A stretch of DNA of 28,759 nt from Macrostomum lignano (GCA_002269645.1 NIVC01005003.1:1-28759); one strand, 5' to 3'. Positions 10,613-28,759 are shown, numbered from the stretch's first letter. Notes: a model not told the origin generated them from the sequence alone. Numbers and translations are program-made.

Positions 10613-11344
10613 CTATTCATTATCTGTGAGCTCCATTCTACGCATGATCTCAAACAAGTCGGTTGGATCACTTGTTTCCCTTGTGGTCTGTGGTGCCTCT
10701 TCAGCGTCAATGTTTTTGAGATTATGCAAGCGTTCAAGACGACCGATTCTTCTCACCGATTTCTGCCATTCGGTAAAAACTAAATCTACAAAGACTTTAA
10801 TTGCAGTAATTCTTACTTTGATTCGATCATGCAACGCTGTTGACTGAGTCATGAACTCTTCTAAATTCCTCACTTTACCTGTGTTGGTTGCGACGTTTTC
10901 TTTAATTCTATCATGCAACGCTGTTGACTGGTTCATGAACTCTTCTAAATTATTCACTTTAGCTGTGTTTGTGAAAACTCCTCCTTCAAGAATACGCATC
11001 CGTCTATCAGTGGAATTTCCCAGAAGATTAACTGTCGATCTTAAGCTGTTGATTTGCGAGACTGCCGAAGTTATTTCTGACCTAAGTTCATTAGTTGCGT
11101 TTAACAACGGCACATAAAGCTTATCACTTTCAAACTTCTGCCTGGCTACTTTAAGCCTGAGATCTTCCATGTTTATTTGCAACTGGTGCATGGAGCGCTC
11201 TAGGGTTTTCAGTCTGTTTTTATTCAGTTTGATCTCTGGGATCTTTTCGTCGCTGTTGATATATCGCCTGTCAAGGATGGATATCTGAGCTGATGTAAGA
11301 GCGCTGTTGCCAGAAATGGATTCACCTGCAAAGTTTATCGACAT
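10613..11344 (-). CDS. Coiled-coil protein with a 28-aa internal duplication (possible fibre/spike)
   Basis: 243-aa heptad-rich ORF. NT(A/G)KV.NLEEFM.QSTALHDRIK is repeated with an 84-bp period. The ATG is preceded by TTAAAAAG. Confidence 0.7.
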   Translation of the reverse strand: MSINFAGESISGNSALTSAQISILDRRYINSDEKIPEIKLNKNRLKTLERSMHQLQINMEDLRLKVARQKFESDKLYVPLLNATNELRSEITSAVSQINSLRSTVNLLGNSTDRRMRILEGGVFTNTAKVNNLEEFMNQSTALHDRIKENVATNTGKVRNLEEFMTQSTALHDRIKVRITAIKVFVDLVFTEWQKSVRRIGRLERLHNLKNIDAEEAPQTTRETSDPTDLFEIMRRMELTDNE

Positions 11345-11360
11345 CTTTTAATAGCAAATT

Positions 11361-12161
11361 TTAAATTACAGTTCTTTTTTCTTTGCTGATAATCACAAAC
11401 TGGTAAGGCTGATTCCACTTGTCATAGCAAAGATTAACGAATTCCTCTTGTGAAATCTTTCTGCTTGAGTTTTTTGTTGGATTTATGAAATAGGCAGGCG
11501 CAATGACCTCATTGTAAAATCTTTTTAACCTGTCCTGTGGAATGGTTGGAAACAGGAGAATCAGATTGCAGTTCCCACGAATTGTTTTGTTCGGGAGCTC
11601 GAACCAGTTCTGTGCAATGTAAATTACATTACAATTGTTATGTCGCCCTCTTGTAAAATAGTTTTCTATCTGCTTCTGTGGGCCTGTCATACAATCATCA
11701 AAGACGATCAAATGCTTTCTCCCCTTTTCTAGCTCATCTGGTTGGGGTAGAAGTTTGGTCTTTGGATCAGCCTGTGGATCTCCATAGGTGAACACTTTAA
11801 TGTTCTGCCATTTTTCATTGTCTTTGAGGTGCTTTGCATATTCGGCAGCTACAATTTCAGGGTTACTGGGAAGGCTCATTTGGTTATTAAAACATGCAAT
11901 AATGTCCTCTTTGTTCAGCTTGTTTTGAAGCCCTGCAATCAGCATTCTATACTCATCTTGATACAGTGTGGGAGAGTAGATGTGCAGAGTGTCATAGTCG
12001 ATAAAGCCAGGTCTAAGAAGCATGTTAAAGACTCTGAATGTTTTACCTGAACCTGATGAACCAACAACAATGCATCTGAAGTGACTCGGGATTGACTCAT
12101 GATGAGAAAACTTAATCTGATTACGTGTCCAGTGAGGATTGAAGTCGTTTGAAAAGTCCAT
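11361..12161 (-). CDS. FtsK/A32-like DNA packaging ATPase
   Basis: Walker A GSSGSGKT, Walker B LIVFDD, and the A32-family motif FTRGRHNNCNVIYIAQ. Confidence 0.95.
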   Translation of the reverse strand: MDFSNDFNPHWTRNQIKFSHHESIPSHFRCIVVGSSGSGKTFRVFNMLLRPGFIDYDTLHIYSPTLYQDEYRMLIAGLQNKLNKEDIIACFNNQMSLPSNPEIVAAEYAKHLKDNEKWQNIKVFTYGDPQADPKTKLLPQPDELEKGRKHLIVFDDCMTGPQKQIENYFTRGRHNNCNVIYIAQNWFELPNKTIRGNCNLILLFPTIPQDRLKRFYNEVIAPAYFINPTKNSSRKISQEEFVNLCYDKWNQPYQFVIISKEKRTVI

Positions 12162-12200
12162 TTTTTCTATGATGAAAAAAATTTAAATAATAAATAATGT

Positions 12201-12368
12201 AGATGTGTCATTTCGGGACTTAGATGTGTCATTTTGGGACTTAGATGTGTCATTTTGGGACTTGGATGTGTTATTTTGGGACTTAGATGTGTCATTTTGG
12301 GACTTAGATGTGTCATTTTGGGACTTAAATGTGTCATTTTGGTACTTAATTGTGTCATTTTGGGACTA
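12201..12368. repeat. 8 x 21-bp tandem repeat upstream of the ATPase gene
   Basis: Unit AGATGTGTCATTTTGGGACTT, with few substitutions between copies. Confidence 0.95.
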
Positions 12369-12409
12369 GTCTTGTACCTTTACATTTCTTGTACCCTCGG
12401 AAAGTACCT

Positions 12410-12808
12410 TTAGTCAAATTTGAAACCACTTCCTTTTTTAATGCTAGCTCTCATCTTCTCATAGACTGCAGGGTCCACACTGTCTGGATTTGGGGCCAGC
12501 GGGGCCAGCGGGGCCAGCGGGGCCAGTGGAGGTTGAATCTCTTGTTTAGGTGTTACAGTATCCTTTATCTTTTTGGCTGCTGTGGCTACACTGCCAGCCG
12601 CTTCGGCAACGTTCTTGATGTTCTCTTTGTTCTCTCCAATGACCTTAAAAATCTTAGCCCCCTGAGCGATCAAATCAGCAAGGCCATTCCCAGAGCGTTC
12701 TTTTCTTGGATAGTGGCCTGCAGGGAAAAGTCCAGATCCGCGTTTAATGAGATTAAGTTCCTCTTTGTCATAGTATTTGTCAATGTCTTTTTCGAAAATA
12801 ATTGGCAT
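12410..12808 (-). CDS. Small basic putative virion core protein
   Basis: ATG at 12808 after TTTAAAAAG. It has GxG motifs (RGSGL, SGNGL, terminal KKGSGF) and a PLAPLAPLAP repeat, a layout like Polinton core proteins. Confidence 0.65.
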   Translation of the reverse strand: MPIIFEKDIDKYYDKEELNLIKRGSGLFPAGHYPRKERSGNGLADLIAQGAKIFKVIGENKENIKNVAEAAGSVATAAKKIKDTVTPKQEIQPPLAPLAPLAPLAPNPDSVDPAVYEKMRASIKKGSGFKFD

Positions 12809-12824
12809 CTTTTTAAATAGAAAT

Positions 12825-14021
12825 TTATTTTTTGTTAAACCGTGAAAGCAAAAGTTCTCTTGCTCTTTTATCGATATATTTTCTCTCAAGCATTTTGTCC
12901 AGGATGTTGACAAATTCTTTTCTATTCTCGTCTTTCATTCCGGTCTTTGCCGCTCCTAGAAGAACAGCTAACCGCTTGTAGAATTCAGGCATGCCTTTTC
13001 CAGTTGAGGGCGGTTGGTCTTGAGGTTGTGGAGTTGGTTGGGCTTGTGGCTGCTGGGGAGGTGATGCAAAAGACTGCTCACTTTCAGAGACGGAACTGTC
13101 ATGTGGTGCCTGTCTTTGTTGAGGTGTGAAAACTCTTTGCTTGATTCTGTTCATTCGATCTGGAGAGTGTTGTTCTAAGTGTTGCCAATCTGTTGGGTTT
13201 TGTTTCTTATATTCAGCTACTTGAGTCGGATCTGCATTTTCCAGTTGCCTGAGTACTTCTGTGAAATGTTGCTGCTGCTGTGGTTGTGGTTGTTGTTGCT
13301 GTTGTTGTTGTTGTTCTAGATATTTTATGACTTCCGCCTGATCTGGCAAATCGAACCATTGTTTAAAGTGATTGTACTTTTTGAATCTAGTCAGGTTGAC
13401 ACCGTTATCATACATAAGTCTCAGGACTTCTGGGGCCTTTAGTATTGCTATATCTCTAGCAAGAGCAAAAGTCACTAGATCTCTATAGTTCTTTAGCTGT
13501 TTGTCCGAGATTCTCTCTTGGTTCTTGGTCATAAAAGTCAGTAAGGTTTCTGTGAAAGGAATGCTCTTAGTTTCCGAGCCTTTGACAACAGAAATATGTT
13601 TCTTATTTATGTCGATATAATATTCCACTGGTTCATTATAAATGTTTCTTCTCCACATACTTATTCCAAATACATATTTCCCATCATGTTCGACACGCTC
13701 TACTGGTCCAAAAATGTTATCTGTCACTTTTAGTTGTGATTGATGTGGTTGTGGTTGTTGTGGTTGCGGCTGTATCTGTGGTGCTTCTGGAATTTTGCCC
13801 AAAACCTTTTGCACTTGGGTTTCCTGTATGTCGTCGATAGTTTCTTTGACCTGATCAATATTTTTCTTAGCTTCTCCATACCCGGGTTTATGAAACTCTG
13901 TGGCTGCTTGGACAAACTCATTGTAGGATTGTTGCTCCTTATTTATTAGCCCGGTAACTCGTTTCTCTGCTTGTGCTAGCTTCTCCAATTCAGATATCTG
14001 CTGTGTACTTTTCCGCTTCAT
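12825..14021 (-). CDS. Conserved Polinton protein, Gln-rich, with a C-terminal GKG..RL..LL..A..G helical domain
   Basis: 398-aa intact ORF. The C-terminal GKGMPEFYKRLAVLLGAAKTG..EFVNILDKMLERKYI resembles the conserved C-terminus of uncharacterised Polinton ORFs. Confidence 0.7.
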   Translation of the reverse strand: MKRKSTQQISELEKLAQAEKRVTGLINKEQQSYNEFVQAATEFHKPGYGEAKKNIDQVKETIDDIQETQVQKVLGKIPEAPQIQPQPQQPQPHQSQLKVTDNIFGPVERVEHDGKYVFGISMWRRNIYNEPVEYYIDINKKHISVVKGSETKSIPFTETLLTFMTKNQERISDKQLKNYRDLVTFALARDIAILKAPEVLRLMYDNGVNLTRFKKYNHFKQWFDLPDQAEVIKYLEQQQQQQQQPQPQQQQHFTEVLRQLENADPTQVAEYKKQNPTDWQHLEQHSPDRMNRIKQRVFTPQQRQAPHDSSVSESEQSFASPPQQPQAQPTPQPQDQPPSTGKGMPEFYKRLAVLLGAAKTGMKDENRKEFVNILDKMLERKYIDKRARELLLSRFNKK

Positions 14022-14051
14022 TTCTTATTTTATTTTATTTTTAGTTAAAAA

Positions 14052-15337
14052 ATGAACGACCCACTGACACCAGTTTTCTACAAAATTAACAAGCCTATTT
14101 TGAGTGATGATAGCACAATCAAAGCGACACAAGTTAGAGTTCCGAGTCACGAGAACCAGAATGAAACTAATTTGGGTCCAGGTCAAACACTGACATTTAC
14201 ATACAATGGATGTTCGTCTCTGGTTAGTGTGCACAGTCTTAAGAGCGGCTTCCATATGACATTTCAATTCAAGACAAAAGGTGGTGCGGATGCGGCTCGT
14301 GCTAACGTTGACAAGCATGATGCGGATGTGGCTCTGATCAGTAACTTTTGGGCGTACATGTTCAAGGAGTTTAGTGTATCGAATGGGAGCACTGAGTTGG
14401 AGCGAATCGCCAACTTTGGAATTGTCTATGACGCTCATTGTTTGATCGAGAATCCTGATTTTATTCAGTTGGGAAGTGGTGCAGGTTTTATTGCAGACGA
14501 AAAAGAAGGAGATATCAATGACAGTGGCTATAAAAATAGGAAGAAGAGATACAACTATGCTTGCAAGGTGCTGATGATGCTGCTAAAAACCCGCTGTATC
14601 GGTCTGTTGATGTATTTGTACCATTGAGATTCATGAGTGGATTCTGTAATACATTTAATCGACTGACTAGTAACTTTAGCTACACATTTAGGATGACTAG
14701 AGATGATCGCAGTAGAGTGTTGTGGACTGGGGCGGACCACACAAGGATGGAGGTGAAGCTAACCGGAATCGAGCTGTATTTGGAAGTCATTGAGCCAAAG
14801 ACTGCACTAAAAGCAGACTATCTTAAGGCAATAGAGAAGGACATTGATGTTGCATACACAGCCTACATGTGTCGAGATGAGCGAAACGAAACTAGAACAA
14901 ACATCTGCATTAAAGAGGGATCATGCAGCAATCCAAGGTATATTATTATTAACATGAGAAACCCAAATAGCATTATACGCTACATGCATGGTGACGTGCG
15001 GTCCATTCAGCATGAAATCAGTGATAATCTTTACCCTGCACTGCCACAAAATGGAGATTTCAGTCAGAACAAGATTAGCAAATTTTATAGCGAGTTGGTC
15101 GACTTGGCTGTGAAAGAGAACAATGGAATTGCTATCACTGCTCTTCAATATGGAACTCTATATCCAATGTTTGGCGCTGATGTGTCTGCCAGACAAATGC
15201 CTACTGATAACAGCCCTGTGAATATCGTGACCAACATTGAGAGGACTGTCGCAACACCCGTGGACTTGTACATTATCTATGCATTTGAGAGGAAGGTGAA
15301 GCTTAACATGATCAACAATTCATCCAGTAAAGTTTAA
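14052..15337 (+). CDS. MCP: Major capsid protein (double jelly-roll, hexon-like); 1-bp deletion near 14560
   Basis: About 430 aa after joining the two ORFs. Motifs SDDSTI.., LISNFWAYMF, VPLRFMSGFC and PMFGADVS fit Polinton MCPs. It is adjacent to the penton-like gene. Confidence 0.82.
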
Positions 15338-15361
15338 ATATTTTTTTTGTGGGTGAAAAAA

Positions 15362-16225
15362 ATGGAAGCTATAGCCGAAAGACTAAACAATATTATTTCG
15401 CACTCCAAGGAGAGCATTCCTATTACAATAACTGGGCGGATTAATGACTCAAACGGGATATTTGTTCAAAAATTAGAGCAGGCGATTAGCCTGGATCCAG
15501 GTGCTAATTACCATGTCTATCTTAACGACTTCACTGGTTGGTCAAACGTTCCCAATGTGACGGCAGCAAATAATAAGTTTTATTACAAATGGAAAGGTGC
15601 AGCAGCAGAACCTGTGGTATTCCCTGTGAGCACGCAAAGTGTGGATACCTACAATTACTTTCTAGAAAACGTCTTTACTAAAAGAGGCCATTTTGAGACA
15701 CCTGATATGAGTAAGCCAGAGAAGAAACTGTTCCCTGTTAAACTAACCTATGATCTCACTGTAATGAGAGTGGTCATGCAAGTTTACAAAGATGCGGAGG
15801 TTGAGTTTAAAGATGACACTTGGTATAGGGAATTGGGATTCGTGAAGAAAGTTTATAAGGCAGAATCCACAGCGCGGACTGTCACTCAAGCATCGGGGGC
15901 CGTTAGCATGGCCCGGGAAAGTGTACGCGGTTTGTTCTTAGCACCCAATATAGCAGACATTGTAAAGGGTTTGAATATTCTAATCAGAACTAATCTCAGT
16001 CTTGATTGGGTATTTAAGGGAAAGCGAACTAATATTTTGTACAACATCTCCAACTCTGTAGCTGGAGGACAGATGGTGGTAGAGAAACCAAATCCAGTGA
16101 AAAGAGTTGTATTGAGTAATAAGGAGATTCACGAGATTGTGCTTCAGTTTGAGACTGAAGATGGGATGGGCGTTGATTTTAATGGGGAAGAGTTTGTATT
16201 GACGTTAATCATTGAGAGAATGTGA
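15362..16225 (+). CDS. mCP: Minor capsid protein (penton-like, single jelly-roll)
   Basis: ISLD..YHVYL..WSNVPNVTAANNKFYY at the N-terminus and FETEDGMGVDFNGEEFVLTLII at the C-terminus, typical of Polinton penton. Confidence 0.82.
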   Translation: MEAIAERLNNIISHSKESIPITITGRINDSNGIFVQKLEQAISLDPGANYHVYLNDFTGWSNVPNVTAANNKFYYKWKGAAAEPVVFPVSTQSVDTYNYFLENVFTKRGHFETPDMSKPEKKLFPVKLTYDLTVMRVVMQVYKDAEVEFKDDTWYRELGFVKKVYKAESTARTVTQASGAVSMARESVRGLFLAPNIADIVKGLNILIRTNLSLDWVFKGKRTNILYNISNSVAGGQMVVEKPNPVKRVVLSNKEIHEIVLQFETEDGMGVDFNGEEFVLTLIIERM

Positions 16226-16229
16226 GAAA

Positions 16230-16469
16230 TCACAATTGCCTAATGATTTCTGCAAAGTTATAGTAGCTGTCATAATCTTTTACATAGGTTACTCCATACT
16301 TATGAAACCAATGTCTTTGGAGAGCTTGATTAATATTAGGGACATTGATTTGAACGTCGGGCCAATATTTTCTCATGTATTCGCTGCATTCAAGTTTGCA
16401 TCGGTACTTACTCTTGTAATTAGGCTCGTGCGTTTTGTAATAAGAACCTGGAGAGACAACTGGAAACAT
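16230..16469 (-). CDS. Small orphan protein (79 aa, Tyr/Lys-rich)
   Basis: ATG preceded by CAATAAAA like the other element genes. Its stop is 4 nt from the penton stop. No recognisable family. Confidence 0.5.
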   Translation of the reverse strand: MFPVVSPGSYYKTHEPNYKSKYRCKLECSEYMRKYWPDVQINVPNINQALQRHWFHKYGVTYVKDYDSYYNFAEIIRQL

Positions 16470-16675
16470 TTTTATTGAAAATTTAATTTTTTTCAAAGGG
16501 TAAGGACCCTGCGCTGATGATTTAAAGTCTTAGGGATCTGGTTTCACGTTGCGGATTGAATGTGGGGAGAAGAATGCAGATTATTTTCTGATTGTTTCGA
16601 AGATGCTATGGGTGGATGTCAGTGGATTATGTCAGTGTCAGTGAGCATAACAGGTGTCCTACTGTTATGCTCTGA

Positions 16676-17683
16676 TTCTGTCAGGGATAATGCTCTGATT
16701 CTGTCAGGGATAATATGGATGGATTTAATGGAATTATGGAGGACGTTTTGTGAGCGAGTGCGACCCCCTTTTTTTCTGATTCTGTCAGGGATAATATGGA
16801 TGGATTTAATGGGATTATGGAGGACGTTTTTGGAGCAGGTGCGACCCCCTTTTTTTCTGATTCTGTCAGGGATAATATGGATGGATTTAATGGGATTATG
16901 GAGGACGTTTTTGGAGCAGGTGCGACCCCCCTTTTTTTCTGATTCTGTCAGGGATAATATGGATGGATTTAATGGGATTATGGAGGAGGTTTTTGGAGCA
17001 GGTGCGACCCCCCTTTTTTTCTGATTCTGTCAGGGATAATATGGATGGATTTAATGGGATTATGGAGGACGTTTTTGGAGCAGGTGCGACCCCCCTTTTT
17101 TTCTGATTCTGTCAGGGATAATATGGATGGATTTAATGGGATTATGGAGGAGGTTTTTGGAGCAGGTGCGACCCCCCTTTTTTTCTGATTCTGTCAGGGA
17201 TAATATGGATGGATTTAATGGGATTATGGAGGAGGTTTTTGGAGCAGGTGCGACCCCCCTTTTTTTCTGATTCTGTCAGGGATAATATGGATGGATTTAA
17301 TGGGATTATGGAGGACGTTTTTGGAGCAGGTGCGACCCCCCTTTTTTTCTGATTCTGTCAGGGATAATATGGATGGATTTAATGGGATTATGGAGGAGGT
17401 TTTTGGAGCAGGTGCGACCCCCCTTTTTTTCTGATTCTGTCAGGGATAATATGGATGGATTTAATGGGATTATGGAGGACGTTTTTGGAGCAGGTGCGAC
17501 CCCCCTTTTTTTCTGATTCTGTCAGGGATAATATGGATGGATTTAATGGGATTATGGAGGACGTTTTTGGAGCAGGTGCGACCCCCTTTTTTTCTGATTC
17601 TGTCAGGGATAATATGGATGGATTTAATGGGATTATGGAGGAGGTGAAAAATTTTGTCCCAGAAGCCCGCCATGCCTTCTACT
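16676..17683. repeat. Right terminal inverted repeat: about 12 copies of the ~82-bp unit plus a 38-bp unique terminus
   Basis: Reverse complement of the left array, including the variant innermost unit (GTGAGCGAGTGCGA vs TCGCACTCGCTCAC) and the short GCATTATCCCTGACAGAA tail. The array stops at 17645. Confidence 0.95.
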
Positions 17684-18272
17684 ATTGAGTCGTTTTTCGG
17701 GAAGATCGTTGCAACTCGTCCAGGTTCTAAGCCCAATGTCTCCTTGTCTCGAATACGGCAACTACTTACACCAAGACAAGGCCTCGATGATGCTTAATCT
17801 GATCAATCAGTCAGGCTCAAGCTCTTCCAAAGCCACCCCCCGTGCTCATCTGACTCGCACTAGCCGCTCTCTCCCACTCCCACTCTAGCTCATATTAGGC
17901 TATTTCTATATCCACTCTTTTTTCCCGGGCGCGCTTTAAATCTCTGAACGTGGAATTCTGCTGCGTAATAGCCACAATGTTCCCCCATACAGTATGTTCA
18001 AGCGGGCAGTGTGTATGTAAATAGGCTCTATTGGATGTGGCTCTACTAAGGCTTTAAAACATCGCGCTTCTATACTGCATAGAGAGACAGTTATATAGTT
18101 GCCATCAATCTTAAAATAAATCTACTGCTGCATATCATATGGTAAAGAACTGGGTAGTTTTAATTGCAGATTGCAAACTGGAACTGTCTTGTGAGATACT
18201 GGCTGCCTTCTACTCGTAGTTGGATTCGGGCGACTTTTTCAAACTACCAATGCACGTAGCTTCGGCGTTGTG

Positions 18273-18828
18273 CTGGCCCTATCTGACACCACATCTTGCG
18301 TCCATCTGGCCCTATCTGACACCACATCTTGCGTCCATCTGGCCCTATCTGACACCACATCTTGCGTCCATCTGGCCCTATCTGACACCACATCTTGCGT
18401 CCATCTGGCCCTATCTGACACCACATCTTGCGTCCATCTGGCCCTATCTGACACCACATCTTGCGTCCATCTGGCCCTATCTGACACCACATCTTGCGTC
18501 CATCTGGCCCTATCTGACACCACATCTTGCGTCCATCTGGCCCTATCTGACACCACATCTTGCGTCCATCTGGCCCTATCTGACACCACATCTTGCGTCC
18601 ATCTGGCCCTATCTGACACCACATCTTGCGTCCATCTGGCCCTATCTGACACCACATCTTGCGTAAATCTGGCCCTATCTGACACCACATCTTGCGTCCA
18701 TCTGGCCCTATCTGACACCACATCTTGCGTCCATCTGGCCCTATCTGACACCACATCTTGCGTAAATCTGGCCCTATCTGACACCACATCTTGCGTCCAT
18801 CTGGCCCTATCTGACAACACATCTTGCG
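18273..18828. repeat. 33-bp minisatellite, about 17 near-identical copies
   Basis: Unit CTGGCCCTATCTGACACCACATCTTGCGTCCAT. Confidence 0.97.
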
Positions 18829-19450
18829 CCTTTTTAGCACCCAATTCAACTGAAGCTTATTTTGACGCTTCTAACGGTCGTTAATAAAAATAGATTGTCA
18901 AGAAAAAACTAGAACCAGCAATACGTCAAATGAATACCAAGATGTCAAATGAATATCAAGTTCCTTTAAACCAATGAAACATCTAACAAATGGAGTAGAT
19001 ATAAATTTTAGCTACCAATTTGAAGATCGTTATATTTAAATTGGGGACGTCAAATTCTTATGATACTACTTGAAACTACTGAAGTTGCTGCATTATGGGC
19101 GATTCTGCATTTCCCATTTTCCTTTGAAACGGAATGAAGCTCTTTGGTTTGAGACAAATCTTGATACTTTCAGCGATTTAATTAAAGAAGGCAAAGTTTG
19201 GTTTGGAGAGGCACACAAAATGGTCAATTATTAGTTTCATAAGTGCTATACATGTGGCTAATTTATTACCTGTACTTTTACTAGTTTATCTACTTCGAGA
19301 ATAAAATCGCTTGGATGCTGTAGGCAGGCACGCACTCACACAGGTGTACAGCAACCATTTTGTGACTTTCAAATTGTCAGACATGTACACTCCCTGTGCC
19401 TTGGGGTCTGGGTCTCATGGCTGTGAGTCGCTCGATAACCCACTCCACTG

Positions 19451-21668
19451 CTACTTGATGCAGCAGAACCAAATCCAACCGATGGTGCTGATGAACAGCA
19501 GCAGCAGCACCATCAGCCAGGTGAACATGCCCGGCCCACCGCCCACGCCGGCCTCTGCTAGCCGAACTCGATTTTGCTCGACTGAGATTTGCTCAGTCTC
19601 TGAGTCATCGCCGGTGCCGACTTTCGCTGGCGGCGACTGCGGTGGCTGCACTGCGGAAGGCTGCCGAGCTTGAGAGCTTCGAGGCTTGGCTGGCTGTCGA
19701 GGTGCAACTTCTTTAACAATTTCTTCCGTTGTTGTTGTTGTTGCTTCTGCCGCTTTTGCTGTTGTTGCAGACTCTGTTGTTGCTACCGTGGCTTTCGCCG
19801 ACGAAGACGCCTGAGGACTTGAAGCTGAAGGACTTACCTCATTGAGCGATGGCTTAGATGTTGACTTTGTGGAAGCTTTTGGTGAAGCAGTCGAGACTGC
19901 AACTTCTGGCTCTTTGCTGGCTGCTCCAGCAATTGTCGATAGCACTGATGAAGCTGAGTTGGTGATTTGTTTTTCAGCTGCCGAAGAAGCCTCGAAAACT
20001 GATGTAGTTTGAGCAGCCTGAGTTCCTGCCGCTGCTGTGCTTTGCGCCACTGCAGCTCCTGCTGATGCTGAGGCTTCGGAGGTCGCAGACCCTGACGGCA
20101 TGAGCAGGTCGTCAAAACCGGCCCAGTCACCGCCACCACCGCCGCCTCCTCCTCCTTCTGCATCGCCTGAGGCCGCCTGAAGAGCGGATGCTGAAGTGAA
20201 ATCAGGGGTGACACACTTGGGTTAATCTGCTCCAGAATCTGCTATTAGATCTGCTCCAGAATCTGCTATTAGATCTGCTCCAAAATCTGCTATTAGATCT
20301 TCTTTAGAATCTGCTATTAGATCTGCTCCCGAATCTGCTATTAGATCTGCTCCCGAATCTGCTATTAGATCTGCTCCTGAATCTGCTATTAGATCTGCTC
20401 CTGAATCTGCTATTAGATCTGCTCCTGAATCTGCTATTAGATCTGCTCCAGAATCTGCTATTAGATCTGCTCCAGAATCTGCTATTAGATCTGCTCCCGA
20501 ATCTGATGATACATCTGCTCCTGAATCTGATGGTACATCTGCTCCTGAATCTGATGGTACATCTGCTCCTGAATCTGATGATACATCTGCTCCTGAATCT
20601 GATGGTACATCTGCTCCTGAATCTGATGGTACATCTGCTCCTGAATCTGATGGTACATCTGCTCCTGAATCTGATGGTACATCTGCTCCTGAGTCTGATG
20701 GTACATCTGCTCCTGAGTCTGATGGTACATCTGCTCCCGAATCTGATGGTACATCTGCTCCCGAATCTGATGGTACATCTGCTCCTGAGTCTGATGGTAC
20801 ATCTGCTCCTGAATCTGATGGTACATCTGCTCCTGAATCTGATGGTACATCTGCTCCTGAATCTGATTGTACATCTGCTCCTGAATCTGATGGTACATCT
20901 GCTCCTGAATCTGATGGTACATCTGCTCCTGAATCTGATGGTACATCTGCTCCTGAATCTGATGGTACATCTGCTCCTGAATCTGATGGTACATCTGCTC
21001 CTGAATCTGATGGTACATCTGCTCCTGAATCTGATGGTACATCTGCTCCTGAATCTGATGGTACATCTGCTCCCGAATCTGGAATTAGATCTGCTCCTGA
21101 ATCTGATGGTACATCTGCTCCTGAATCTGATAGTACAGTACATCTGCTCCTGAATCTGATTGTACATCTGCTCCTGAATCTGATGGTACATCTGTTCCCG
21201 AATCTGCTATTATATCTGCTCCCGAATCTGGAACTAGATCTGCTCCTGAATCTGATGGTGCATCTGCTCCTGAATCTGATGGTACATCTGCTCTCGAATC
21301 TGGAATTAGATCCGCTCCTGAATCTAATGGTGCATCTGCTCCTGAATCTGATGGTACATCTGCTCCAGAATCTGATGGTACATCTGCTCCTGAATCTGAT
21401 GGTACTGTACATCTGCTCCTGAATCTGATGGTACATCTGCTCCAGAATCTGATGGTACATCTGCTCCTGAATCTGATGGTACTGTACATCTGCTCCTGAA
21501 TCTGATTGTACATCTGCTCCAGAATCTGATGGTGCATCTGCTCCTGAATCATCTTTAACCAATGAAAGCCATAGACAGCAGCAAATAGAACTCACCAGTG
21601 TTGACAAGTAGCAGAGAAGTCAGCGCAATCGACAGCAGATGCGATTTTCCTTGCCAGATCAGCATCAT
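19451..21668 (-). CDS. Host type I membrane mucin-like protein, about 270 aa, two coding exons (21668..21596 and 20190..19451)
   Basis: Exon 1 ends ACT G|GTGAGT. The acceptor is TTCACTTCAG|CA with a TTAAC branch-like site about 30 nt upstream, and the phases match (phase 1). The spliced product is MMLIWQGKSHLLSIALTSLLLVNTASA (signal peptide), an S/T/A-rich stalk, the TM segment MFTWLMVLLLLFISTIGWIWF and a CCIK tail. Confidence 0.8.
20225..21550. repeat. 24-bp intronic minisatellite with two subtypes
   Basis: ATCTGCTCCTGAATCTGCTATTAG (20225..20490) grades into ATCTGCTCCTGAATCTGATGGTAC. It fills the 1405-bp intron of the mucin-like gene. Confidence 0.95.
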
Positions 21669-22307
21669 GCAAGGCCTAAGAAATGCCACTGTAGATTACA
21701 AATCCACTAGGTTGTCAAACTAAAGACTTGTTCTTTTGAAGGTTTCTGCTTTACAATAGAAGTTTTCTATCTAACAGTCTCTCATAAGAGCGGATAGATG
21801 GAGAGAGTTTGGTTACAATGACAGACCGGCAGCAACTGCTCTTTCGTTGCTCTACAGTACAAATTTTAAGCATCTAACTGCTGCGAGCTTGCTGCATTTA
21901 ACAATATTGTGCTTTCTTGCACAGCCGAGCATGCTGTCTGTCTGTCTGTCTGTCTTTCTTTGCAGCATTTCTTCATTGCACTCGAGCGGGTGTACAGTCT
22001 CCGAGTCACACCATGTCAGAGCGGAGCATAATGCTTGAGCAGAGTACGGTGCGCTGGCCAAACAAAATAGAGAAGAAAGGAAAAGAAGAAAAAAATTCAA
22101 AACAGAATATGAACAAATCTGATTCTTTGTATAACTATGCAGACGTTATTCTTTTTAATTTGCTATTTTTTCGTTCCTTCAGTCCATGCATCATTGCGCC
22201 TCGGGGGGTTTTCAGTATCTCGGTATGATAGACGACTCATCGACCCTGAATTGAATTGTCAGTCTTGCTGGAGTTTTCTAGAGTTCAGAAAGTCTAGTAG
22301 TAGACAG

Positions 22308-22390
22308 GGTAGGTAGGTAGGTAGGTAGGTAGGTAGGTAGGTAGGTAGGTAGGTAGGTAGGTAGGTAGGTAGGTAGATAGGTAGGTAGGT
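22308..22390. repeat. (TAGG)n microsatellite
   Basis: About 20 direct GTAG copies. Confidence 0.97.
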
Positions 22391-23443
22391 TTTGCAGGGT
22401 TTGACGACCAGAGGGCGGCGCTGTTCCATGCGGTGGTCAAAGACTGTTTTGCTCTGTAACGATGAAGCGTCTCAAGGTCGGCGACGACGAATGAGTCATC
22501 AAAGCGGCGAGGAGATGCGCACTCGGTGTTTCAAAGGACTGCCTGCTGACTGACTCCGGCGCCCCGAACTTTGTAGTTGTTGGTAGCTTGGGTGGTTCGG
22601 TAGGTTCGGTAGATTTGGTAGGTCTGATAGGCTCGGTAGGTTCAGTAGGTTTGGCAGGTGCGGTAGGTTTGGTAGGTTCAATATTTTTTAATACAAACTC
22701 GGTGGTACTGCATAGAGCCAGTGAGAATATACTTGAAATCAATCAAAAAAATCGATTGATAATAATCAATCCATGTTGATTTCAGGTTTTTCACAAGGAC
22801 TACTTAAGTTGTCCTTGGTTTTTCAATCAAAACATGGTGAACAGTTGTTAGATAGAAAACAGTGCCACAATGCAAAGCAGAACTGGATAGGAAGTTTTTA
22901 GCATCTTACTCAAAGTAGTTTCTAAGTGAATAGTGTTTGGCAGTAGAATCAGTTCAACGATCTACGAGAGCCTCCACTGGTCTGCCCGGCTGAAGAAGAA
23001 GGGCCTGCAAGGCCAATACGGCCAGCCGTGTGGCCGGTCGATTGACGGGTTGAGTTGAATTGGACAACGCGAAGATTTTCTGTAAGTTGTTTTTTTAAGG
23101 AGGGACGGAACCAGGGGTTTTTTGGTACTCGTACAAGAGGCAGACGCGTTTACCGACGAGTTGTATCTTTTGTCCTTTTCTGTCATCTTGATTTCACCAG
23201 ATCCAAACTGATTCTGATCTCCACGTTTGACCTGTGCAGAATCTTTAATCTTCATCTCTGTCTCCTCATCTTCGCTGGAGGAAACACAAATATCCAACGA
23301 TAAAAATCGGGGGGAGAACAGGTAGCAACGAAGACGGTCAACTGCCGCTTTGTGACGTCTGCGAGCGTCCGTCAGCTGCCGATGAAGCTGCGGCTTTCGG
23401 TTGGGACTGAGGGCAGCCGTCAGTTCGTCTGGGGGGGTTCAGG

Positions 23444-24280
23444 GGGTTGTAGCCTGCAGAGGACACCCGATTGATAATATGGGAGGTTGCAGCCTGCAGA
23501 CGACACCCGATTGATAATATGGGGGGTTGCAGCCTGCAGAGGACACCCGATTGATAATATGGGAGGTTGCAGCCTGCAGAGGACACCCGATTGATAATAT
23601 GGGAGGTTGCAGCCTGCAGAGGACACCCGATTGATAATATGGGGGGTTGCAGCCTGCAGAGGACACCCAATCGATAATATGGGGTTGCAGCCTGCAGAGG
23701 ACACCCGATCGATAATATGGGAGGTTGCAGCCTGCAGAAGACACCCGATTGATAATATGGGGGGTTGCAGCCTGCAGAGGACACCCAATCGATAATATGG
23801 GGTTGCAGCCTGCAGAGGACACCCGATCGATAATATGGGAGGTTGCAGCCTGCAGAAGACACCCGATTGATAATATGGGGGGTTGCAGCCTGCAGAGGAC
23901 ACCCAATCGATAATATGGGGTTGCAGCCTGCAGAGGACACCCGATTGATAATATGGGGGGTTGCAGCCTGCAGAGGACACCCGATTGATAATATGGGGGG
24001 TTGCAGCCTGCAGAGGACACCCAATCGATAATATGGGGTTGCAGCCTGCAGAGGACACCCGATTGATAAAATATGGGGGTTGCAGCCTGCAGAGGACACC
24101 CGATTGATAACATGGGGGGGGGTTGCACTCTGTGGAGGACACCCAATCGATAATATGGAGGGTTGCAGCCTGCAGAGGACACCCGATTGATAATATGGGG
24201 GGTTGCAGCCTGCAGAGGACACCCGATTGATAATATGGGGGGTTGCAGCCTGCAGAGGACACCCGATCGACAATATGGGT
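23444..24280. repeat. ~40-bp minisatellite, about 21 copies
   Basis: Unit GCAGCCTGCAGAGGACACCCGATTGATAATATGGGGGGTT, 38-41 bp variants. Confidence 0.96.
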
Positions 24281-24887
24281 TTAAGTTTACTTTTAGATTG
24301 AAAAAAATGTTGTGGTATTTGATCATTTCTTTTAACTGACAGGCTTCTGAACTTCCGAGAAGCATATGAAACTAGTAAGGGCATGCGAAGACTTACCACA
24401 GCTATAGACGACAACTGTATAATATTCTTCCATTCTTACTAAAAAATCGACGTTTTCAGCGAATATTTAATTACTCGTAGTGCAAGTTTTTCAGAAGCCA
24501 GAGAGATGTCTTGTCTCTCTTTCGGAGCTCTGGGTTTTGTTGCTTTTGTACTCAGATTCGGGTTTGCAATTAATTTGCAAAACTATAGAAAGTGACAAGG
24601 AATTGCCTACAGTCTGCAGGCTTCGTGTCTGTTTCGAGGGCTCTTCAAACTCGCACTGCATGTACAGATCTTTGTCAAATCTTCACAACTTCATATTTTA
24701 CAACAGATTATAGACTCACTGTGTCTTTGCTTGGCTTTGTATCAAACTGCAGACATGAATTAGGTAATTCAGGTCGCAGTAATCAAGATTGGGCCTGACA
24801 GCAATTCGCTCAAAACTAGCTACTGGAGGTAAAAAGTAACGCCTTTTTATGAAAGGCAAAAAATAACTAGCTAGCTAACTACGAGCG

Positions 24888-25877
<990 letters not shown>

Positions 25878-26493
25878 CAATGCACCCTGCTAACTGCATG
25901 GTATTACTGTGGCCTCATTTGTTGATAACGAGGATGAGAATGAAGACGCGGTGAACTCAAAAAGACAGCCCGACGCCAGCCAAACGAACCGCTGGGATGA
26001 CGGCCTGCCAGCCTTTGAATGGGGAGAAGGGAGAGACAGACGGTTGTGGGGTGGCTGCTGGCGGAACAGCGTTGAGGCTTTTTGACAGCCGCGGCATCCA
26101 TTGATGGCGAGGGCGGCGTCGGTCCCAGCCGATGCAGCCAGTCAGTCAGGCGGCTCCATCATAGGGGAGCAGGCTGCGGTGTGACACGGGGAGAATTCAG
26201 TACCGGAACTGCCGACTTCTATAAGCGAGGAGGCTGATATGCAGCTCATAATTCATTACCCTGTCACGTGAATCCTAAATCCCCGCGCGCAGAATGGGCT
26301 TTGTAGTAAACATTATCGGCAATGAAAAAAATCATCAATACATTGATATCATGGCGCTTAGTCGGAGCATATCTGACAGCGCTTTTTTATGCCACTCAGC
26401 TGACCATTCTAATAATAGGTTTGCCATGAGAAAAACATTTATTCGGCCGTGTGTGCTTGGGCTGAAAAAGTATTCAAGTTAGATTTGGACTAC

Positions 26494-27252
26494 TTCTTGG
26501 GATTAGATTCTTGGGGTATCTGGAGATTCTGGGGATATCTGGAGATTCTGGGGATATCTAGAGATTCTTGGGGTATCAGGAGATTCTGGGATATCTAGAG
26601 ATTCTTGGGGTATCTGGAGAATCTTGGGATATCTGAAGATTCTTGGGTTATCTGAAGATTCTTGGGATTTCTGGATAATCTTGGGATATCTGAAGATTCT
26701 TGGGGTATCTAGAGAATCTTGGGGTATCTGGAGATTCTGGGATATCTGGAGATTCTGGGGATATCTGAAGATTCTTGGGATTTCTGGAGATTCTTGGGGT
26801 ATCTGGAGATTCTTGGGGTATCTGGAGATTCTTGGGGTATCTGGAGATTCTTGGGGTATCTGGAGATTCTGGGATATCTGGAGATTTTGGGGATATCTGG
26901 AGATCTGGGGATATCTGGAGATTCTGGGGACTTCTGGAGATTTCGGGGATATCTGAAGATTCTTGGGATTTCTGGAGATTCTTGGATATCTGAAGATTCT
27001 TGGGATTTCTGGAGATTCTTGGGATATCTAAAGATTCTTGGGATATCTGGAGATTCTTGGGATATCTGGAGATTCTTGGTATATCTGACTATTCTTGTGA
27101 TTTCTAGATATTCCTGTGATTTCTAGATATTCCTGTGATTTCTAGATATTTCTGTGATTTCTAGATATTCCTGTGATTTCTAGATATTCCTGTGATTTCT
27201 AGATATTCCTGTGATTTCTAGATATTCCTGTGATTTCTAGATATTTCTGGGA
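26494..27252. repeat. Degenerate 18-20-bp minisatellite followed by about 8 x 19-bp repeat
   Basis: TTCTTGGG(G/A)TATCTGGAGA-type units run to about 27095, then TTTCTAGATATTCCTGTGA units run 27101..27252. Confidence 0.9.
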
Positions 27253-27699
27253 TTTCTGGGTATTCTTGGTCTTGGCACTAGCTTTATTAGGATTTAGACT
27301 TTGAAACTAAATTGTTGGAACTTGAATTGGGATTCAAGTTTGGGACTCCAGGGTTCTTGACACTACGTCAAGGTCTATGAAGACCTGCCAAGAGGTTGGA
27401 AATCCTTCCACCCTACCAGGGGGAAAAGCTGGGATCATGGAAGGAACCTGCTTGTTACTGATTCAACTAAGATCCATCCCCAAACCCACCATCATCCCCT
27501 TGTTCCCGAATTCCCATTGGTTGTGCCTTTGCGAACCCACCCTCGGCGCCGGTAAAGCGACCCAATCCTGCGACTTCTCTCAGTGGTAAGAAAAACCGAT
27601 CTTATTACTTTTAGCTAAACACCGGTGTCAAGTAAGCCACTTGAGATAAATAAAACTTCGAAGCAGATAATTAAAAAACAAACTGCATTAATAACTAAT

Positions 27700-28045
27700 A
27701 TGTCGCGTCATTATCAGCACCAGCAGATTTATGATCCCCAAATTGCCTGCCCAGAGCAATACCTGACTCAACAGCCGTATCACCATCAAGGTCACGTGCT
27801 CTATCAACAAGCCTCAGAAGCTGCCACCAATATACTTCAGTCGCCTCAATGTGCATTCGCTAGCGAAAATGCGTCAACGGTTGGCATGGCAACAACTCTT
27901 CATCAGCATGGCAGCGGGTCAGCAGTCAGGCCGGATTCAACCAGCCCGTGCTGCAGCAACGACAGCGGCGGACAGGCTGGCGGATTCAGTGCGGCGCCGT
28001 TCAAATGGATGGAGATCAAACGGCATCAGGCTAGGATGGCGAAAG
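27700..28045 (+). CDS. Hox1: Exon 1 of a probable Hox paralogy group 1 (labial) homeobox gene
   Basis: Q/H/Y-rich N-terminus followed by PFKWMEIKR at 27997..28023, a YPWM-type hexapeptide of the labial/Hox1 form (cf. TYKWMQLKR, TFDWMKVKR). A canonical donor AAAG|GTGAGC follows a few codons later. The homeodomain exon is not in the window. Confidence 0.72.
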
Positions 28046-28139
28046 GTGAGCCTTTGCTGTGTTTCTGCTTCTGATTTAATGAATGGTAAACCGAATAGTT
28101 AGCAAACTGAGTGTCAGGTGGTGTCAAACTGAGTCTAGA

Positions 28140-28759
28140 AGTGTCTTGACAAGGCGCCAAATTGGGTGTAGAAGTGGTGCCAAACTGGATGTAGAAGTGG
28201 CGCCAAACTGGGTGTAGAAGTGGCGCCAAACTGGGTGTAGAAGTGGCACCAAACTGGGCTTTGAGGTGGCGCCAAACTGGGTGTTGTTGAGGTGGCGCCA
28301 AACTGGGTGTTGAGGTGGCGCCAAACTGGGTGTTGTTGAGGTGGCGCCAAACTGGGTGTTGAGGTGGCGCCAAACTGGGTGTTGTTGAGGTGGCGCCAAA
28401 CTTGGTGTTGAGGTGGCGCCAAACTGGGTGTTGTTGAGGAGGCGCCAAACTGGGTGTTGTTGAGGTGGCGCCAAACTGGGTGTAGAAGTGGCGCCAAACT
28501 GGGTGTAGAAGTGGCACCAAACTGGGCTTTGAGGTGGCGCCAAACTGGGTGTTGTTGAGGTGGCGCCAAACTGGGTGTTGAGGTGGCGCCAAACTGGGTG
28601 TTGAGGTGGCGCCAAACTGGGTGTTGTTGAGGTGGCGCAAAACTGCGTGTTGAGGTGGCGCCCAAACTGGGTGTTGAGGTGGCGCCAAATGGTGTTGAGG
28701 TGGCCAAACTGGTGTTGTTGAGGTGGCGCAGAACTGCGTGTTGAGTGGCGCCAATCCCA
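28140..28759. repeat. 23-26-bp minisatellite in the putative Hox intron
   Basis: Unit GAGGTGGCGCCAAACTGGGTGTT(GTT), with GTAGAAGT variants. It runs off the end of the window. Confidence 0.95.

Follow-up and report, generated by a model that had tools for sequence, protein, structure and literature searches.

Organization of the locus

We analyzed a 28,759-nt stretch of DNA from the macrostomorph flatworm Macrostomum lignano (GCA_002269645.1 NIVC01005003.1:1-28759), referred to in its full length as the window. It is composed of three blocks, namely a virus-like transposon of the Polinton/Maverick type (3-17642), host DNA dominated by tandem repeats (17643-27672), and an exon of the homeobox gene Hox1 together with the start of its intron (27673-28759). 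The arrangement as a whole is very probably that of the first exon of an already published Hox1 gene, with ordinary intergenic DNA and a decaying Polinton copy upstream of it. According to this explanation, the exon at 27700-28045 would encode the N-terminal arm and the PBX-binding hexapeptide of the protein and would be spliced, at a donor after 28045, to a homeobox exon located outside the window. Upstream of it would lie a divergently transcribed, putatively membrane-anchored gene and several tandem-repeat arrays and, past the 3' end of that gene, one Polinton/Maverick copy whose terminal inverted repeats are built of tandem repeats.

The first exon of Hox1

The following features make up the Hox1 end of the window.

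27673-28045, plus strand: Hox1 exon 1, with a transcript-backed 5' leader from at least 27673 and the coding sequence at 27700-28045; matched to MLig_HOX1_RNA815_17610
28046-28759, plus strand: start of Hox1 intron 1, phase 1, donor GTGAGC; contains a 23-bp satellite
28153-28754, no strand: the 23-bp satellite in Hox1 intron 1, from the tandem-repeat scan

The ATG at 27700 opens a frame of 115 codons plus one base, which closes at AAAG/GTGAGC (28045/28046), and neither this frame nor its start codon nor the donor site is disrupted. The hexapeptide region PFKWMEIKR is encoded at 27997-28023 on the plus strand, and the exon ends just after this PBX-interaction motif. A strict motif of the paralogue group 1 (PG1) type is found a single time when the window is translated in all six frames, and in none of 300 windows simulated with a first-order Markov model. 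The GC content of the exon (54%) is higher than that of its surroundings.

The identity of the exon is established by a published transcript. MLig_HOX1_RNA815_17610 is a 271-residue translation given in Additional file 1/Table S1 of Currie et al. (2016; EvoDevo 7:7, PMC4815179), and it contains MSRHYQ...PFKWMEIKRHQARMAK, followed by a linker and then by the homeodomain. In a tblastn search it produced a single strong match to the window (123 of 126 residues identical, E 7e-81, 27673-28047), which spans nine residues of translated 5' leader and the entire exon 1, including PFKWMEIKRHQARMAK, and ends at the predicted GT donor. The two sequences differ at three positions, by a D/E substitution, by a codon that the window lacks, and by an X on the side of the transcript. 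Residues 127-271 of the transcript, the homeodomain included, found no match anywhere in the window, which stops 0.7 kb into intron 1 with the homeobox exon beyond it; no homeobox was found in the window, including the 27.7 kb located 5' of Hox1.

The assignment to Hox1 rests on the transcript as well. It carries a Pfam homeodomain (PF00046, E 5.6e-23), and its best match among solved structures is human HOXB1 (1b72_A, 104 bits, E 8.8e-29), ahead of Scr (73 bits), Antp (about 71), Gsx2 (69), Pdx1 (67) and Cdx2 (59). The HMMER alignment to 1b72_A also pairs the transcript hexapeptide with that of HOXB1. Currie et al. placed this transcript within Hox1 in their phylogeny (PMC4815179), and the grouping into PG1 used here combines that phylogeny with the ranking of solved structures. 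Hexapeptides are also present outside Hox proteins, for example in Msx. A non-metazoan host and the non-Hox hexapeptide classes Tlx, Cdx, Pdx and NK were considered as alternatives and are excluded by the transcript and its homeodomain.

The peptide at the exon end is in agreement with this assignment. PG1 proteins end their first exon with TFDWMKVK (TFDWMK in HOXA1) and PG2 proteins with PWMKEKK (PMC3038165, PMC8417444). The non-proline residue before W and the hydrophobic-K-R residues after WM in the window fit the former and not the latter, whereas the E after WM stands where PG1, including HOXB1, has K. The second M. lignano Hox1 paralogue, RNA1310_11722.1, contains the same FKWMEIKRHQ behind a different N-terminus (PMC4815179); E in place of K after WM is thus common to both paralogues. 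Two further differences from HOXB1 concern the linker between hexapeptide and homeodomain, which has about 60 residues in the M. lignano transcript versus about 24 in 1b72_A, and the N-terminal arm, for which no similar sequence was detected.

Searches with the exon protein by itself were uninformative. No relative was obtained in a word-indexed search of 5.8 billion proteins, nothing significant was found in the PDB with either the whole exon or the hexapeptide region, a full HMMER search against 1.84 billion representatives returned only one spurious repeat protein, and no relative could be confirmed from a degenerate-pattern scan of JGI metagenomes. Since these searches gave no relative, a Hox1 call made from the exon alone would amount to eight residues. 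The exact products of the exon reading frame (with two start choices), of the element's ATPase and of the neighboring reading frame, both described below, are not on record in the look-ups performed.

Taken with the transcript, sequence comparison confirms 27700-28045 as coding exon 1 of a Hox1 (labial-class) gene, of which M. lignano has two. A first-pass annotation of this DNA had proposed a hexapeptide exon of a Hox1/labial-like gene here, and the intact reading frame, the donor, the transcript match, the ranking of HOXB1, the published phylogeny and the PG1-type hexapeptide bear it out on both counts. It had also called for the class of the following exon to be checked, and the transcript continues into a homeodomain that is HOXB1-like, rather than lacking one or carrying one of a non-Hox class. 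From the window, the 5' end of M. lignano Hox1 is now defined at the genomic level, with its start codon, the end of exon 1, the phase-1 intron and its head-to-head neighbor. This structure and the description of the Polinton copy are what is new here.

The exon could also derive from a duplicated and possibly silent Hox1 copy instead of the locus producing RNA815_17610. This is suggested by the three differences from the transcript, which include a one-codon gap, and by the genome itself, as the sequenced DV1 line has extra chromosomes and 180 Mb of duplicated blocks that are at least 95% identical. In addition, a protein model from another assembly, A0A1I8JR64 (P0122), matches the region at lower identity. 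Against this, frame, start codon and donor are all intact, an identity of 98% is within the allelic range, and the 5' leader of the transcript is also colinear with the genome. We therefore regard a duplicated copy as unlikely and retain the assignment to the published gene.

The gene between the element and Hox1

Between the transposon and Hox1 lies one host gene, which contains one of the tandem arrays within its span.

19451-23426, minus strand: uncharacterised host gene ending in a transmembrane tail and oriented head-to-head with Hox1; protein models A0A1I8JR64 and P0123
20225-21550, no strand: 24-bp array inside the span of this gene, from the tandem-repeat scan

The minus-strand reading frame matches the uncharacterised M. 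lignano protein A0A1I8JR64 of UniRef at 98% identity and a second protein model, P0123, at 100%; these matches also identify the host as M. lignano. The non-Hox gene that the first-pass annotation had noticed between element and exon is thus backed by two protein models. Two gene structures were considered. Model A was derived from the sequence as one frame, broken by one in-frame stop, that consists of a signal-peptide-like exon, a GT-AG intron of 43 nt, some 50 DSGADVPS repeats, an S/T/A-rich stretch and a transmembrane tail, the last of which is the same as in model B. Model B follows P0123 at about 100% identity in four minus-strand blocks (23426-23154, 23088-22966, 20190-19861 and 19696-19454) that are joined by canonical GT-AG junctions, with the 24-bp array inside a 2.8-kb intron.

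The array may be either intronic or coding. It is open in several frames on both strands, and because a period that is a multiple of three leaves several frames open, a long reading frame across it is not coding evidence. No Pfam domain was found in either model, and the label "mucin-like" given to the gene by the first-pass annotation is unproven.

Another observation concerns the public model itself. Residues 22-72 of the UniProt entry A0A1I8JR64 align antisense to Hox1 exon 1 (27824-27968, minus strand), and the rest of it aligns to the minus-strand gene 4-8 kb away. Judged from these alignments, the public model is chimeric and crosses the Hox1 exon in antisense orientation.

A Polinton-type element with tandem-repeat termini

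The remaining 17.6 kb of the window are occupied by the element. Its genes were compared with those of a 10.4-kb metagenomic contig, ena:ERZ21818092 NODE_5414 (L004 hereafter), in addition to Pfam. The features and open reading frames (ORFs) of the element are the following.

3-2350, no strand: left terminal array, 82-bp unit, at least 28.9 copies; runs off the window start
2483-2782, minus strand: accessory ORF with a RING/C3HC4 zinc finger; PF15227 E 1.4e-7 and PF00097 E 1.4e-6, both above curated cut-offs
3455-4033, minus strand: parvovirus-type phospholipase A2 (PLA2) ORF; PF08398 E 1.1e-13; 31% identical to the L004 PLA2 gene
3935-4971, plus strand: rve-type integrase gene with one frame change and no stops; PF00665 E 5.8e-6, at 26.9 bits below the gathering cut-off of 32.6; 39% identical to L004, E 3e-60
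5521-9396, plus strand: protein-primed DNA polymerase (pPolB) gene with six frame changes; two pieces match PF03175 (DNA_pol_B_2), E 4.5e-6 and 4.8e-5
9430-9831, plus strand: adenain-like cysteine protease, intact; PF00770 E 1.6e-4, 21.9 bits (cut-off 21.3); 42% identical to L004, E 3e-29
11361-12161, minus strand: A32/FtsK-type packaging ATPase, intact; PF04665 E 3.6e-6, 27.1 bits (cut-off 22.8)
12825-14021, minus strand: 398-aa Q/P-rich ORF, intact, without significant family; its C-terminus resembles an L004 gene, E 7e-6
14052-15337, plus strand: double-jelly-roll (DJR) major capsid protein (MCP) gene with one frame change; PF21738 E 1.8e-4, below cut-off
15347-16225, plus strand: intact 292-aa ORF adjoining the MCP gene; 37% identical to a 261-aa L004 gene, E 6e-55
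16694-17642, no strand: right terminal array, 82-bp unit, inverted relative to the left array, 11.6 copies; from the inverted-repeat comparison

The two 82-bp arrays are inverted and 95-100% complementary, with arms of up to 338 nt at 99% complementarity. The element measures at least 17.6 kb within the window, as its true left end lies beyond the window start. The copy number at the two ends is very unequal, and just inside the arrays only about 68 bp of unique sequence are common to both sides.

Among the core genes, the two polymerase pieces match PF03175 at successive profile positions and the C-terminal piece also matches the L004 polymerase. The N-terminal piece of the integrase is in a different frame from the remainder. 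The MCP is 43% identical, in two frames, to residues 1-423 of the 431-aa L004 protein that is annotated as a DJR capsid protein (E 1.6e-91). The 292-aa ORF has no Pfam match and, from its position next to the MCP gene, is a candidate minor capsid (penton) protein. Within the polymerase region, one piece has a match to Recombination endonuclease VII (PF02945, 26 bits, cut-off 23.6), and this stretch may be a nuclease module inserted into pPolB.

The combination of pPolB and rve integrase has been named as the defining pair of Polintons (PMC5499653). Like Polintons/Mavericks, including the polintoviruses and the "adintovirus" type of animals, the element possesses both genes together with an adenain-like protease, an A32-type ATPase and a DJR MCP, and it has terminal inverted repeats and the typical size. 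It differs from them in that its termini are built of 82-bp tandem units in unequal copy number, that RING-finger and parvovirus-type PLA2 ORFs are added, and that three core genes are interrupted. On the basis of its gene content, the element is therefore classified as an ordinary and partly broken virus-like transposon of the Polinton/Maverick type. The "giant viral insertion" of the first-pass annotation is accordingly sustained as regards the Polinton gene set and the inverted arrays, whereas "giant" is not appropriate to an element whose size is typical for Polintons.

The closest relatives are of environmental origin. ATPase relatives at 62-78% identity were found only in metagenome and SRA environmental assemblies of ENA and Logan, on short contigs. 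Five contigs with ATPases at 47-78% identity (L001 and L003-L006) come from ENA ERZ27313535 and ERZ21818092/4 and from Logan SRR32046558 and ERR12380048. One of them, L004, is a more distant relative that has the same gene set with all genes uninterrupted, including that for PLA2; its integrase has 316 aa (annotated as rve) and its MCP 431 aa. Identity to the window is 47% for the ATPase, 43% for the MCP, 39% for the integrase and 42% for the protease, and PLA2 and four further ORFs are also matched. In contrast to the window, L004 has a different gene order, compact intact genes and no host flanks, and it looks like an uninterrupted, genome-like contig of the element's lineage.

The PLA2 domain ORF (PF08398) is kept in the window (3455-4033, minus strand), in another environmental contig (L002, 9216-9632) and in L004 (6960-7469), and this conservation suggests that a function in virion entry may have been retained in the lineage. 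The RING-finger ORF adjoins the left array and has no counterpart among the L004 genes that match the window. Two short tandem repeats lie within the element: a 21-bp unit present eight times at 12200-12367, between genes, and a 9-bp unit present 3.9 times at 12492-12526, which the ORFs across it translate into a short repeated peptide. Through the copy described here, a flatworm lineage of Polintons is recorded whose termini consist of tandem repeats and which carries ORFs for a RING finger and a parvovirus-type PLA2.

Interrupted genes of the element

Comparison with L004 locates eight frame changes and no stops in the aligned stretches of the element, with six in the polymerase, one in the MCP and one in the integrase. 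The ATPase, the protease, PLA2, the 292-aa ORF and three further shared ORFs are read through in the same comparison, and the RING-finger and 398-aa ORFs are also open. Short introns between the polymerase pieces, which would then be exons, were considered and rejected as an explanation. A strong donor (GTRAGY) was present at none of the seven junctions and looser donors at one of the seven; a loose GT..AG test was passed by every junction and was hence uninformative. Because strong splice donors are absent at the junctions, introns are improbable and frame changes are the better description.

These frame changes could reflect the assembly instead of the genome, in which case the element would be intact and recently integrated, and all eight would be indels of a long-read assembly. 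Several features point in this direction. All of the interruptions are frame changes with no stops in the aligned stretches, seven other ORFs of the element are intact, the terminal arrays agree to 95-100%, long reads were used to build the published M. lignano assembly, and the tandem arrays themselves carry 2% indels. However, six of the eight frame changes fall in the polymerase alone, where assembly errors would be expected to be more evenly spread, and the Hox1 exon and the blocks of the neighboring gene show no frame errors against independent sequences. An intact element is thus improbable, albeit less so than a duplicated Hox1 copy. The frame changes are probably real, and this Polinton copy is, as assembled, most likely a decaying endogenous element.

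The element, Hox1 and the flatworm Hox cluster

From the end of the right array at 17642 to the Hox1 ATG there are 10,058 bp, so that the distance of about 10 kb reported by the first-pass annotation is accurate. Six tandem arrays and the minus-strand gene lie in between, and the nearest neighbor of the element is not Hox1 but the 3' end of that gene, which is 1.8 kb away. The satellites that had been noticed upstream of the exon correspond to these six arrays.

The Hox genes of planarians are unclustered, and orthologues of Hox2 and Hox5 were not found in Macrostomum (PMC4815179). A polyclad genome likewise has no single Hox cluster, and a review describes the cluster as disrupted in Platyhelminthes, with transposable elements proposed as one cause. 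Invertebrate Hox clusters measure 500-10,000 kb, and the disorganised ones admit repeats and non-Hox genes; transposon invasions are also known from the ordered cluster of amphioxus, where they co-occur with Hox inversions. Hox1 in the window has a non-Hox gene as its neighbor, is surrounded by repeats and has no other Hox gene within 27.7 kb, as is reported for Schmidtea, Prostheceraeus and parasitic flatworms, whose arrangements are of the disorganised or atomised kind (types D and A). The other M. lignano Hox genes cannot be placed relative to Hox1 in a window of this length. Given the length of invertebrate clusters, and the repeats and non-Hox genes found in them, a stretch of 27.7 kb lacking a homeobox is unremarkable.

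The first-pass annotation went further and proposed, from the expectation that Hox2 is the 5' neighbor of Hox1 and that compact vertebrate clusters exclude large repeats, that the cluster is dispersed or broken here and that the insertion may affect Hox1 regulation or mark a breakpoint. The first premise fails as Hox2 was not found in Macrostomum, and the vertebrate rule is irrelevant in a genome of which more than half is repetitive. Dispersal as such is true of flatworms and was already known; it is neither demonstrated nor caused by this locus. In favor of a breakpoint in a formerly intact Hox cluster, or of a perturbation of Hox1 regulation, one may cite the position of the element 10 kb 5' of Hox1, the 27.7 kb upstream without another homeobox, the proposed contribution of transposable elements to cluster disruption in flatworms, and the amphioxus case. 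Yet, as Hox2 was not found in Macrostomum, no Hox gene is missing at this locus, and between the element and Hox1 there are a complete gene and six repeat arrays. Moreover, dispersal is common to planarians, polyclads and parasitic flatworms and must long predate a copy whose arrays are 95-100% alike. That similarity fits an insertion far younger than the phylum-wide declustering, an argument which is weakened by the concerted evolution of arrays. A scan of the window for Hox/PBX sites (TGATNNATKR) gave 3 sites versus 7.7 expected and none near Hox1; there is thus no site enrichment, and the element adjoins another gene. A breakpoint or a regulatory effect is therefore very unlikely and finds no support here.

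A narrower possibility is that the insertion is recent and polymorphic between lines or between duplicated chromosome copies and alters the expression of Hox1 and its neighbor via its arrays or via chromatin. We consider this very unlikely as well. If true, such a polymorphic regulatory insertion would be a naturally occurring example of Hox gene modulation by a virus-like element, in an animal where the constraints of the cluster are already gone.

The explanation that we prefer, a published Hox1 exon with ordinary intergenic DNA and a decaying Polinton upstream, has points that weigh against it as well. The homeobox exon is located outside the window, so that the link to the homeodomain is provided by the published transcript and not by contiguous genomic sequence, and the three differences from that transcript mean that the exon could be an allele or a duplicated copy and not the transcribed locus. 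The element's left end also lies outside the window, as does its target-site duplication, and the eight frame changes are possibly indels of the long-read assembly.

In M. lignano over half the genome consists of repeats, 15% are simple and tandem repeats, and large parts are duplicated. The DNA upstream of Hox1 is ordinary intergenic sequence of this species, as in any random gene neighborhood there, and we infer that the juxtaposition of Polinton and Hox1 is equally ordinary and without functional meaning. The locus carries little weight for Hox biology, given that the gene and the dispersal of flatworm Hox genes are both published and that a transposon 10 kb away is to be expected where repeats make up over half the genome.

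Tandem arrays upstream of Hox1

Apart from the 24-bp array in the minus-strand gene, five arrays were located between the right terminal array and Hox1 by the tandem-repeat scan.

18273-18828, no strand: 33-bp minisatellite, 16.8 copies
22308-22390, no strand: (GGTA)n microsatellite
23442-24279, no strand: 40-bp minisatellite, 21 copies
24864-25877, no strand: (TAAC)n microsatellite, about 254 copies
26505-27269, no strand: 19-bp minisatellite, 40 copies

No Pfam match was found for the unique ORFs in the interval between the element and Hox1, and Rfam and tRNA scans of the window returned no matches. The (TAAC)n array, which extends over 1 kb at 90% match, produces a sharp dip in GC content (29%) and a strong strand skew in the composition profile.

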